Source: Mantamonas sphyraenae STR306 (Eukaryota; Protista; CRuMs). From it: DNA of 64,000 bases. Every line of letters starts with the position of its first letter. The stretch's first letter is position 1. Where the stretch lies: NCBI GenBank assembly GCA_026936335.1, contig JAPMXV010000013.1, positions 183,156 to 247,155 on the forward strand, in the 5' to 3' direction. The notes below the pieces were generated by a model. The model did no database searches, was not told the origin of the DNA, and saw nothing but the letters and a program-made list of their open reading frames with translations. Of the stretch, positions 47,559 through 64,000 are shown piece by piece. Position numbers and translations under genes: made by a program.

Positions 47559-48626
47559 TCATGGCGCCAGCCAGGAGGCGATGCGCCACAGGATCTCGAC
47601 TGGGAGACGGTGCCACAGACTGTCTTGCTGGTCGTCACGAGAGCGAAGGGCGTTGATCATGACCATGGTCCAGACTTCTTGCCAGAAGGGTTGGTCGGCG
47701 TAGAGGGCGTGGTTCTGCGGGGACCAGGAGCAAAGCACCCAGGGAGCCGCAAGGAGCCTCAAACAGGTGTTGAGGTCGACCCAGAGCTCGTCGCGACCAA
47801 AGGCACACATGAGCTCACGTTGATTGTACATGCAAGCACCCATATAGCGTGGAGAGGCGTCGGGAAAGTCGTAGATAGTGCTGCGGCCGGTGTGGAGATT
47901 GACGACTTCGCCACCGCCAAGGACACCTTTCGAGGCAATCCATCCGCCAAAGCGGACGAGGTGGTCGCCAAAACAGGCTGCTGCACCGCCGTAAACGCGC
48001 TCGCGGCCCGGTCTGCGGACGAGAGGCTTGAATTCGAGGGTGTCGCGCTGGAGCAGAAGGATGTCGTCGTTGCGGTCCTCGTCGACGCCGTCATAGCCGC
48101 CGTAGAGGACAAAGTCGTCGTGCCAGGGCAGGAGAAGGTGGTAGGCGCGGACGACGGGGTCCTTTTGTGGGACGGTGGTGACCGTGAGGGAGGTGGGCCC
48201 TGTGCGAGTGAGGAGGAGGAGAGTGGACTGGATTGACAGGGATGAGGCAACACCGCCATGAATAAGAATACTTTGGGGATTGTAGGCGCAACTGGCGGAG
48301 TTTTGCGTGGGATGGACGTCGTTGTCGAGCTGAAGATCGAGGTCGAGCGGGCGAAGATCAATGAGCTCCTGGAACTGTTGGAATTGCCAAGCAAGGAGTT
48401 GGAGGGAAGAGCCAAACGAGCCACCAATGACAAGGATCCAGTCCTGGATGACGGTTACGATGGGCGCGACGAGATCTGGAGTCTGTTCGACAGCGAGGAG
48501 GTTGCCGCTTTCGATATGTAGGACAAGGAGGTCCTGGCGTGCTCCACCCGCGACGACCCGCGACGTCAAAGTCGAGAAGGGCGCCAGACATGTCAGAGGC
48601 GCCCATGGCGTCGAGAGGTTCGCCAT
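47559..48626 (-). CDS. Kelch-repeat beta-propeller protein with C-terminal F-box-like motif
   Basis: Repeated hydrophobic-GG motifs (ILVIGG, ILIHGG, FVLYGG, LVRFGG). C-terminus WSPQNHALY...LPVEILWRIASWL. Confidence 0.68.
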   Translation of the reverse strand: MANLSTPWAPLTCLAPFSTLTSRVVAGGARQDLLVLHIESGNLLAVEQTPDLVAPIVTVIQDWILVIGGSFGSSLQLLAWQFQQFQELIDLRPLDLDLQLDNDVHPTQNSASCAYNPQSILIHGGVASSLSIQSTLLLLTRTGPTSLTVTTVPQKDPVVRAYHLLLPWHDDFVLYGGYDGVDEDRNDDILLLQRDTLEFKPLVRRPGRERVYGGAAACFGDHLVRFGGWIASKGVLGGGEVVNLHTGRSTIYDFPDASPRYMGACMYNQRELMCAFGRDELWVDLNTCLRLLAAPWVLCSWSPQNHALYADQPFWQEVWTMVMINALRSRDDQQDSLWHRLPVEILWRIASWLAP

Positions 48627-48686
48627 CGAGGGCCTGCATTGGGTGCGCGAGCGAGGGCAAGAGAAGCGAGGAGAAGACGGGCGGCG

Positions 48687-49178
48687 ATGTCGATGCGTAG
48701 GACGACGCTGCGGTCAACTGTGGGATGGATTATTGGACGGGCAGGGCACACGGTTGCAACGAATCGACGGGCGCGGTTTGACTATGAACTGCAGGGCTCT
48801 GAGCTGGAGGCCGGCCTTGTGCTACAGACGAGCGAGGTAAAGGCGCTTCGAGCAGGGCACTGTGACATTGCAGCGGCACATGTGGGCCACCGCAAGGGAG
48901 AATTGTATCTATACAACGCACACATTCCGTGCAATGACCCTCGGTACGGGGTACACGAGGCGCACCGTGCGCGGAAACTGCTGACGTCAAAGAGGGAGCG
49001 ACTGCGGCTGATGCAGGAGTACCAGCGGAACGGAATGTCCATTGTGCCGCTTCGTGTGTACTTCAACAACCGAGGGTATGCCAAGGTGGCAGTGTCACTT
49101 GCGCGGGGGAAAAAGTCGAGGGACAAGCGGCAGGCGATCCGTGAGCGGGATCTTGCACGAGCGGCATCCTCATGGTGA
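48687..49178 (+). CDS. smpB: SsrA(tmRNA)-binding protein SmpB, probably mitochondrion-targeted
   Basis: NRRARFDY, EAGLVLxxSEVKALR, LYNAHIP, RKLL, IVPLRVYFNNRGYAKV, LARGKKxxDKRQAIRERD. N-terminal extension MSMRRTTLRSTVGWIIGR. Confidence 0.93.
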   Translation: MSMRRTTLRSTVGWIIGRAGHTVATNRRARFDYELQGSELEAGLVLQTSEVKALRAGHCDIAAAHVGHRKGELYLYNAHIPCNDPRYGVHEAHRARKLLTSKRERLRLMQEYQRNGMSIVPLRVYFNNRGYAKVAVSLARGKKSRDKRQAIRERDLARAASSW

Positions 49179-49299: not shown

Positions 49300-51261
49300 A
49301 TGGCGAAACATGAGCAGGCCGACTTGATGCAGGATCTGTTTGACGACGACAGCCCGCCGGTGGTGAACTTGAACGATCGGTCGTTCTCACACATGTCGGT
49401 GGAGAGCGGAGAGCGAGAGGGGGAGGCAAAGACGGGCGGGAGGCAGGGGACGTCGCTCGCTGATGAACTGCATTGGAACGACATTGGGTCGATCAACAAT
49501 ACAGCGTTGATGCGGAATATGAAGTGTACGAGGGAGTGCGGAAGAGGGATGGGAGGCGTGGATGTGATTGGCGCCAAAACGCTGACACGAAAACGGGATA
49601 TGGGGCCTGGCACAGCGGTGGACACGACACGGAGCACAGTGGGGTCGTCATACGGTGGGCAGGGAGCGGGGTGGGCACCGGCAGATGACATCCAGATGAG
49701 TCTGGTGGAGCAGGAGGTGGCGAAACAACTGCAACTTTCGACGAGGGCGAGTGGGTCAAGTCGGCCTTTGCAGCCGAAGCGGACGTTTACAAGCCTGTCA
49801 CGCCTGCATGGAGGGTCGACGGGAGTGGGAAGGCCGTCGGGAACAGTGGGACCACAACCACAACCGACGGCTCCGCAGCTGGAGGCGACGTCTACGACAC
49901 GAGTTTGGTCGGCAGCGCCTGGTCACACGGGGGCGACACGAGTGGCACAGCAGGACGCCGAAAGGCCACCGCCACCGCACAACCCGGACACTGCGGAGCC
50001 GACGGCGCCACAGCTGGACGTAGTGGCTGGGCAAACGGGGTTTGACGCAGAGGCGTTGATTGCGAGGTTGAGCAAGCCCGTGGAGGAGGTGGTGCATGCT
50101 CAGAGGCATCGAGTGGAAACTATTGCGAAACAAGATGCCGAGACTGATCTGCAGCGACAACTGGCGGCTATGCGGCGTCAATTGGGTGCTCTGGAAGGGA
50201 AACTGAACCATATTGAGCGGCACGAGCACCCAGAGGCGGAACGGCGCACGCATGAGCAGGATCATGACCGTGTGGACGCCTACGTGGATGCAGCAGTGCG
50301 GCATCACGGGGAGTTTGCTCCGCTGGACGAGGACACGCATGCGTCGCTGTACGACGAGCATCATTCGCCACAGATGTATTCGTCGATGGTGCGGAAGGGT
50401 CAGTACCAGGCTCCGTCGCAACCATACAGTGTGAGTAGCATTGGGAGCATGCCTGGACTGAGTGACGTGGAAAGGGAGAGCGGTGACGTGCGAGGAGGGA
50501 GGCGCAGGAGGGGAGGCGGAGAGAAAGAGAAGTACTCGCCGGCATCGGCCACATCAAGGAGGTCGGGGAGGTCGAGGAGGTCGGAGAGGTCGGAGAGGTC
50601 GCACCGTCCGTCGTCGGCGTCGTCGCGTGGGGCAGGAGGAAGGCGGCGTTCGGGGAGTGTGTCGTCGAGCGGATCGAGTGTATCGAGCGTGTCGAGCGTG
50701 TCGAGCAGATCCTCAGCAAGGCGTGGAAGCAGAAGGGATGGATCGGCGTTGGAAAGGACGAGGGCGACGTTGGAGAAGGAGATTGCAGCGAGGAAACGGG
50801 CGCAACGGAGGGCCAAGGAGTACAAGCGGCGAATGGAGCAGCTGGAGCAGGATGTGGCACACGCGTCGACGTTCCAGCAAAAGGCAAGCAAACTGGCAAG
50901 CAAGCTAAGCAAGTCTGAAGAGGCGCGCAAGGACCTGCAGCACAAGGTGGAGATGCTGAAGAAGCACGTGCGGAGGCTGGAAGACGAAAACCACGAGCTG
51001 CAACTGCGTGTGGAAGAGGCAGAGTCGATGCCCACGTCGGCTGTGTTTACGGTGGATGACTATCTGCACAAGCTGACGGGAGGGGCCAAGCACAGCAGCA
51101 GTACAAAGGGAGGAAGCAAGAAAAAGGGCAGTAGGCGAGGAATGTCGACGTCGACGTCGACATCGTCGACAGCGAGCAGCTCGGCAGCCAAGAAAAAGCG
51201 CACGCGAAAGCGCAGCAGCACGTCGACGACGAGTGGGGTGCGGCACATCGCGTGGCGCTGA
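49300..51261 (+). CDS. Hypothetical coiled-coil/low-complexity protein
   Basis: Long ORF with heptad segments (LERTRATLEKEI..LQHKVEMLKKHVRRLEDENHEL). No family recognised. Confidence 0.7.
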   Translation: MAKHEQADLMQDLFDDDSPPVVNLNDRSFSHMSVESGEREGEAKTGGRQGTSLADELHWNDIGSINNTALMRNMKCTRECGRGMGGVDVIGAKTLTRKRDMGPGTAVDTTRSTVGSSYGGQGAGWAPADDIQMSLVEQEVAKQLQLSTRASGSSRPLQPKRTFTSLSRLHGGSTGVGRPSGTVGPQPQPTAPQLEATSTTRVWSAAPGHTGATRVAQQDAERPPPPHNPDTAEPTAPQLDVVAGQTGFDAEALIARLSKPVEEVVHAQRHRVETIAKQDAETDLQRQLAAMRRQLGALEGKLNHIERHEHPEAERRTHEQDHDRVDAYVDAAVRHHGEFAPLDEDTHASLYDEHHSPQMYSSMVRKGQYQAPSQPYSVSSIGSMPGLSDVERESGDVRGGRRRRGGGEKEKYSPASATSRRSGRSRRSERSERSHRPSSASSRGAGGRRRSGSVSSSGSSVSSVSSVSSRSSARRGSRRDGSALERTRATLEKEIAARKRAQRRAKEYKRRMEQLEQDVAHASTFQQKASKLASKLSKSEEARKDLQHKVEMLKKHVRRLEDENHELQLRVEEAESMPTSAVFTVDDYLHKLTGGAKHSSSTKGGSKKKGSRRGMSTSTSTSSTASSSAAKKKRTRKRSSTSTTSGVRHIAWR

Positions 51262-63540: not shown

Positions 63541-63814
63541 GGTGGTTGTGGTGGTACTGGAATGTATGTGGATTGTGTTGGACTGGTGGAGGGTGTGGTG
63601 GGTGTTGGTGATACTTTGGTTGAAGGCGGATGGGCAGTGCAGACTGCGCGGCGTAGCAGGACGACGGCCACTCACCAGCAACGTTTCCACTCCCACCCAT
63701 TGCCCACTGCCCCACGTCCCCACCCTTCTCAGCCACCCAGCCAGCAGACACAAGCACGACTCAGATGACGTAGACCGGACTCATCACATCCGAAGCAATG
63801 AAATCAGACTACGG

Positions 63815-64000
63815 CTAGGGCTAGGGTTAGGGTTAAGGTTAGGGTTAGGGTTAGGCTTAGGGTTAGGGTTAGAGTTAGGGTTAGGGTTAGGGTTAGGATT
63901 AGGGTTAGGGTTAGGGTTAGGGTTAGGGTTAGGGTTAGGGTTAGGGTTAGGGTTAGGGTTAGGGTTAGGGTTAGGGTTAGGGTTAGGGTTAGGGTTAGGT
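63815..64000 (+). repeat. Telomeric (TTAGGG)n array with proximal variant units (CTAGGG, TTAAGG, TTAGGC, TTAGAG, TTAGGA)
   Basis: About 31 hexamers running to the window end, with the G-rich strand oriented 5'->3' toward the end. Confidence 0.97.

Follow-up and report, generated by a model that had tools for sequence, protein, structure and literature searches.

A bacterial-type SmpB encoded in the nuclear genome of Mantamonas sphyraenae and its probable role in mitochondria

The stretch of DNA analysed here, referred to as the window (64 kb of a Mantamonas sphyraenae contig), contains at positions 48687-49178 of the forward strand an intronless reading frame that runs from ATG to TGA (163 codons plus TGA in the ORF listing) and encodes a complete SmpB protein of 163 amino acids. 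The product matches the Pfam SmpB family PF01668 with an E value of 4.7e-40 and 137 bits, against a cut-off of 27, in an alignment that spans residues 23-160 of the protein and positions 1-137 of the 143 positions of the model. It also passes two equivalog models of NCBIfam, NF003843 (146 bits vs. a cut-off of 130) and TIGR00086 (135 bits vs. a cut-off of 119). The part covered by the Pfam match (48753-49166, +) constitutes the SmpB core, formed by the beta-barrel, the central loop and the start of the C-terminal tail. Among solved structures, 15 SmpB chains were matched by phmmer (best E 4e-34), and an AlphaFold2 model built on an input alignment of 60 sequences has a mean pLDDT of 86.4. When this modelled fold was compared with the PDB, all 21 matches with an E value of 0.001 or less were SmpB, the best of them with TM scores of 0.85-0.91 and an rmsd of 1.3-1.5 Å. 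A profile search of the 25-Mb assembly gave a single SmpB match, and an exact-sequence look-up of the 163-residue protein found no identical protein on record. The SmpB gene is genuine and intact: the coordinates given for a complete SmpB in an earlier note on this DNA are exact, and the Pfam family, the NCBIfam equivalogs and the predicted fold all agree on its identity.

The assembly comprises 25,061,354 bases in 78 contigs, with about 59-60% GC and TTAGGG ends; the published FALCON assembly of M. sphyraenae, from which the mtDNA was removed by its authors, is described as 25.06 Mb in 78 contigs with a GC content of 59.19 and TTAGGG repeats (PMC10492846). The contig bearing SmpB is 247 kb long and telomere-capped, and the telomeric TTAGGG repeats seen at its end (63813-64000) lie about 14.6 kb from the gene. 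The upstream neighbour, transcribed divergently, encodes a Kelch-repeat protein of 355 amino acids (47559-48626, -; PF24681 E 3.5e-12, below the family gathering score), and 60 bp separate its start codon from that of SmpB (spacer 48627-48686, from the ORF coordinates). At a distance of 121 bp from the SmpB stop codon starts the gene of a 653-amino-acid Ser/Arg-rich coiled-coil protein (49300-51261, +; an ORF with weak coiled-coil Pfam matches). Further neighbours include Ada3/TADA3, a CHAT-SH2 protein, an SNF2 helicase, a mitochondrial carrier, an ankyrin-RING protein and a USP deubiquitinase. The claim that SmpB is embedded among intron-containing eukaryotic genes is thus sustained in part, since the neighbours are eukaryotic, with introns verified only elsewhere in the genome (in Hsp60). 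The composition of SmpB, for its part, does match that of its host, as had been proposed: its GC3 is 0.65 vs. 0.67-0.74 in the neighbouring genes, and its synonymous-codon log-ratio of +0.21 falls on the side of the host genes (-0.03 to +0.19) and not on that of bacterial smpB genes (-0.17 to +0.02, from 35 genes of similar GC). Eukaryotic genes lying 60 and 121 bp away, a telomere on the same contig, the single copy and the host codon usage together identify SmpB as a single-copy nuclear gene. As to the neighbours themselves, the 653-amino-acid protein has long Ser/Arg-rich tracts, a C-terminal coiled coil and host-like codon usage, and the 60 bp between the Kelch (-) and SmpB (+) starts imply that both genes share a very short bidirectional promoter region or that their 5' ends overlap.

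To assess the state of the protein, its residues, tail and N-terminus were compared with those of 119 alphaproteobacterial relatives. Of the columns that are near-invariant in these SmpBs (at least 95% conserved), 35 of 38 are kept in Mantamonas, despite an overall identity to the relatives of 46-54%; the three altered positions are G48T, Y83N and W156L, of which the second lies in the central loop and the third in the tail. The central loop, which is gone in degenerate SmpBs like those of Carsonella and the hemoplasmas, is undeleted in Mantamonas, with a gap of one residue at most in comparison with Thermus and Thermotoga SmpB. That invariant residues have been retained on a long branch in phylogenetic trees speaks for purifying selection over long periods and would thus point to a working protein.

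The C-terminal tail comprises everything from the DKR motif onwards (residues 146-163; 49122-49175, +). Counted from the D of DKR, it has 18 residues vs. 22-26 in 119 of 119 alphaproteobacterial relatives, which makes it the shortest of the 120 sequences compared, 4-8 residues below the relatives. Both the GKK and the DKR motifs are present, position 156 is L in Mantamonas and W in 98% of the 119 relatives, and R162 has changed to S. A helix is predicted for residues 147-162 in the AlphaFold2 model. The shortened tail and the replacement of the usual DW by DL had been noticed earlier, and the observation is correct relative to the Alphaproteobacteria. Still, the shortening, real as it appears from the alignments, need not disable SmpB, since the tail of the functional Thermus SmpB is equally short; the position of the W is V in this protein and M in that of Thermotoga.

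At the opposite end, the Pfam match is preceded by an N-terminal lead (residues 1-22; 48687-48752, +) that is a candidate mitochondrial presequence. Ahead of the NRRA motif Mantamonas has 25 residues, while the median of the 119 relatives is 13 and none of them exceeds 20; these 25 residues include four Arg and seven Ser/Thr, with no Lys and no Asp/Glu. An N-terminus that is rich in Arg, Ser and Thr and free of acidic residues is the typical composition of a matrix presequence. The model assigns residues 1-20 a low pLDDT and gives them no secondary structure, and the amphipathic (helical hydrophobic) moment of the N-terminus does not exceed that of shuffled sequence. The frame upstream of the start codon is open for 54 codons and contains no in-frame ATG, and the 60-bp spacer leaves no space for an upstream SmpB exon unless this overlapped the Kelch gene. 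Judged by composition, a mitochondrial presequence on SmpB is plausible; the presequence-like extension proposed in the earlier note holds as to its length, greater than in all 119 relatives, and its Arg/Ser/Thr-rich, acid-free character, and finds no backing in the amphipathic moment, which is no better than in shuffles. In the Mantamonas genome, presequences are in general hard to read because introns split the 5' ends of genes such as those of Hsp60, ATP synthase beta and citrate synthase. The gene of mitochondrial Hsp60 (G000:C50:143669-145441, +), for example, is interrupted after model position 33 by an intron of some 190 bp, and since its first visible exon contains no in-frame ATG, another short exon probably precedes it.

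The organelle to which such a presequence would direct SmpB has retained numerous bacterial traits. The Mantamonas mitogenome, of 53 kb and with 62 protein genes, is the most gene-rich outside the jakobids and includes rnpB, ccmABCF, tatA and secY/A/E/G (preprint 10.1101/2024.01.30.577968). The ancestral, gene-rich mitochondrion that had been anticipated from the SmpB sequence is therefore borne out by the published mitogenome, with its 62 protein genes and its rnpB, sec and ccm genes. The nuclear assembly encodes in addition RnpA, the bacterial-type RNase P protein (G000:C30:274313-274711, +; PF00825 E 1.8e-17), with a basic N-terminus. Nuclear RnpA and mitochondrial rnpB would form a second bacterial RNA-protein pair likewise divided between both genomes, a combination that in Andalucia is said to have been singled out earlier as a primitive trait. 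Genes with an RF-1 domain are two only in the assembly (G000:C35:278346-278648, +, and G000:C75:32874-33206, +), one being a full-length release factor and the other a short GGQ protein that resembles ArfB/ICT1, with a C-tail rich in Lys and Arg and an N-terminus that looks like a presequence. The presence of this ArfB/ICT1-like factor suggests a back-up route of mitoribosome rescue that would be independent of SmpB, a point against the mechanism proposed below.

In the plastid-less Mantamonas cell, mitochondria are the only compartment with bacterial-type ribosomes, and SmpB probably works there. The mechanism proposed here, which builds on the established biology of SmpB (reviewed in PMC8786322) and is favoured with moderate confidence, is that the nuclear SmpB is imported and pairs with a cryptic, divergent mitochondrial ssrA to rescue mitoribosomes. 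SmpB would be made in the cytosol and imported via its short Arg/Ser/Thr-rich, acid-free N-terminus. Once in the mitochondria, it would bind a small mitochondrial tmRNA charged with alanine, through the tRNA-like domain of this RNA, and EF-Tu would bring the SmpB-tmRNA complex to mitoribosomes that have stalled at the 3' end of truncated mRNAs and whose A site is empty. The SmpB tail would then probe the vacant mRNA channel and license Ala-tmRNA to take over the nascent chain, leading to the release of the ribosome. Because the tag reading frame is missing in the known mitochondrial tmRNAs (PMC11915505; PMC3590771), the Mantamonas system is expected to free ribosomes rather than to tag proteins. 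A tail that is 4-8 residues shorter and lacks the conserved Trp would fit such a reduced role, in which there is no resume codon to place. In every lineage checked, nuclear SmpB co-occurs with mtDNA ssrA (PMC7050145 Table S3B), and the model predicts that a divergent, unannotated ssrA resides in the approximately 5 kb of non-coding DNA of the 53-kb Mantamonas mitogenome, which also stands out by its rnpB and a complete Sec system.

A search for this partner gave the following picture. In the 64-kb window, ARAGORN found no tRNA or tmRNA genes and no Rfam family scored above its gathering score, and the models of mitochondrial and alpha-type tmRNA (RF02544 and RF01849) produced zero matches in the nuclear assembly. 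Four sub-threshold matches of 75 nt to RF00023 in the nuclear assembly are tRNA-Ala genes according to ARAGORN, not tmRNA. A cox1 gene was not found in the nuclear assembly either, in line with the removal of mtDNA by the authors (PMC10492846). In the mitogenome of M. sphyraenae, annotated with MFannot, the rRNAs, 26 tRNAs, rnpB and the proteins are listed and ssrA is not (preprint 10.1101/2024.01.30.577968). By its own account, a 2025 paper ran RF02544 on the Mantamonas and ancyromonad mitogenomes; the result is not given and no ssrA is reported. Our literature search found no report of ssrA or SmpB in Mantamonas, nor of SmpB in CRuMs. Mitochondrial ssrA genes are 60-110 nt long, poorly conserved and repeatedly missed in annotation (PMC10352661).

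These searches, whose negative outcome counts against the main reading, bear directly on a first alternative, in which SmpB is imported and the tmRNA gene has been lost, so that the protein would act at stalled mitoribosomes alone, e.g., by sensing the empty A site, or together with another tRNA-like RNA that is unrelated to tmRNA or has diverged beyond recognition. We regard this as unlikely, although several observations speak in its favour. Two independent mitogenome annotations report no ssrA, one of them using the dedicated covariance model RF02544; the C-tail lacks the conserved Trp and is shorter than in the other 119 sequences; and precedents exist in an isolate of Carsonella with a degraded ssrA and an smpB without relaxed constraint (PMC4131195) and in the jakobid J. 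bahamiensis, in which ssrA is undetectable (PMC3590771). On the other hand, the tmRNA-binding surfaces are conserved, with 35 of 38 positions kept and the central loop intact, which would be hard to explain without an RNA partner, and it is precisely mitochondrial ssrA genes that are notorious for being missed (PMC10352661). The alternative, if true, would represent the first tmRNA-independent function of SmpB in a eukaryote. To our knowledge, no tmRNA-independent activity of SmpB has been established, which counts against it as well.

The origin of the gene is a related matter. Among the best 120 database matches listed, every named protein is from Alphaproteobacteria, with 48-56% identity, 56% being the highest identity to any database protein among the matches listed; SmpBs of other eukaryotes are not found in this list of 120. 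The ranking is similar in BLAST comparisons, with a median of 46% identity and 114 bits against an even draw of Alphaproteobacteria, 39% and 91 bits against a gammaproteobacterial clade, and 38% and 84 bits against evenly drawn genomes of other phyla. A cyanobacterial or plastid affinity is excluded, every named protein among those best 120 matches being alphaproteobacterial. Three maximum-likelihood trees were built, one quick tree of 131 rows and a quick and a careful tree of 77 rows, in which the Mantamonas protein is the only eukaryotic SmpB. In these trees the terminal branch of Mantamonas SmpB measures 1.1-1.2 changes per site, vs. medians of 0.06-0.32, and emerges from a weakly placed node with no supported sister in any of the three; forcing it into the gamma clade is not rejected by the AU test (p 0.149). 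Scans of genomes and metagenomes for close relatives returned bacterial-type loci only, with at most 51% and 46% identity, respectively, and no mantamonad relative. The alphaproteobacterial look that had been ascribed to the sequence is thus upheld by the similarity ranking and not by the trees, which leave the placement without resolution and a gamma position unrejected. On the similarity evidence, an alphaproteobacterial affinity is favoured, and SmpB may have been inherited from the mitochondrial ancestor or acquired later from an alphaproteobacterium, two origins between which the trees do not decide.

Such a later horizontal transfer from an alphaproteobacterium, occurring well after the origin of mitochondria and leaving a gene with a mitochondrial function or none, partly overlaps with the main reading and appears to us rather improbable. 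With free-living Alphaproteobacteria SmpB shares a high identity (54-56%), its location is subtelomeric, and no particular placement is supported by the tree, all of which would accommodate a transfer. Against it stand the long terminal branch (1.1-1.2) without a specific donor clade, a codon usage that is fully host-like, and the N-terminal lead that SmpB has acquired. A further point in its favour is the distribution of the gene, as SmpB was scored absent in 2020 in the transcriptome of M. plastica, which counts against the main reading too, and likewise in other CRuMs (PMC7050145 Table S3B). However, these absences rest on transcriptomes, and in the decontamination of Mantamonas transcriptomes sequences were treated as contaminants when their best GTDB hit reached at least 50% identity and coverage (PMC10492846). 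With 54% identity and 84-88% coverage, SmpB would be expected to be discarded by this rule, and the filter may explain the earlier absent scores. Finally, that SmpB derives from bacterial contamination or from an assembly made chimeric by a bacterial read is very unlikely, since, bacterial as its nearest relatives all are, it is a single 492-bp ORF on a telomere-capped contig of 247 kb, flanked by eukaryotic genes 60 and 121 bp away, with no bacterial neighbour genes, host-like codon usage and no more than 56% identity to any database protein among the matches listed.

Reading the gene as that of an imported SmpB that would pair with a mitochondrial ssrA has implications beyond Mantamonas. Mitochondrial trans-translation is a patchily distributed relic of bacteria, and a SmpB in CRuMs adds to it a deep lineage next to Amorphea, strengthening the case that the last eukaryotic common ancestor already possessed the system and that many losses followed. 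There is also a methodological warning in the case, in that a rule based on at least 50% identity and coverage to a prokaryote would strip conserved organelle-derived genes of this kind from protist proteomes.

Nuclear genes for a mitochondrion-targeted SmpB accompanied by an ssrA in the mtDNA occur in jakobids, oomycetes, Palpitomonas, Ancoracysta and vannellid amoebae (PMC7050145; PMC4131195), and mitochondrial ssrA is found as well in haptophytes and malawimonads (PMC10352661). Within this group, the SmpB of the jakobid Andalucia godoyi (ANDGO_03389; PMC7050145) resembles that of Mantamonas in being of bacterial type, encoded in the nucleus, of an alphaproteobacterial affinity that for Mantamonas is favoured on similarity, and associated with a very gene-rich, bacteria-like mitogenome. 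Both organisms keep RnpA with a mitochondrial rnpB, and both keep SecY, Tat and Ccm. They differ in that the tmRNA partner is known in Andalucia and none has been reported for Mantamonas, in that bacterial SmpBs are far more similar to the Mantamonas protein (about 54% identity) than to that of Andalucia, and in that Andalucia belongs to Discoba and Mantamonas to CRuMs, with a mitogenome that lacks the jakobid RNA polymerase genes. In oomycetes (Phytophthora, Albugo and Saprolegnia), SmpB is also nuclear and bears an N-terminal import signal, and the partner, where known, is a reduced mt-tmRNA without the tag reading frame, as far as these are described in PMC4131195 and in Hafez et al. (2013) as cited there. 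The oomycete SmpBs are scored as mitochondrial by predictors and have been reported to cluster apart from Alphaproteobacteria (PMC4131195).

Among bacterial proteins, the best matches are the SmpBs of alphaproteobacteria such as Lutibaculum baratangense, Microbaculum marinum, Stella humosa and Rhodospirillum rubrum (48-56% identity), with which the Mantamonas protein shares the motifs NRRARFDY, GELYL-N-HI, RKLL, VPL-YF and GKK-DKR, the fold and the central loop. Differences concentrate at the two ends of the protein, with 5-12 extra N-terminal residues that are acid-free and carry Arg instead of Lys and a tail 4-8 residues shorter, to which are added the substitutions W156L, G48T and Y83N and the location on a eukaryotic chromosome with host codons. 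The SmpB of Thermus thermophilus (PDB 1j1h, 4v8q), which we take to be the structural reference for SmpB on the ribosome, aligns without gaps to residues 23-159 of the Mantamonas protein with an identity of about 45-47%. In each of the two proteins 20 residues follow GKK, and Thermus has V where Pseudomonadota have W; the partner of Thermus SmpB is a full-length tmRNA with a tag frame. Placed beside these systems, the SmpB of Mantamonas is not a new system but a known kind of system in a new supergroup.
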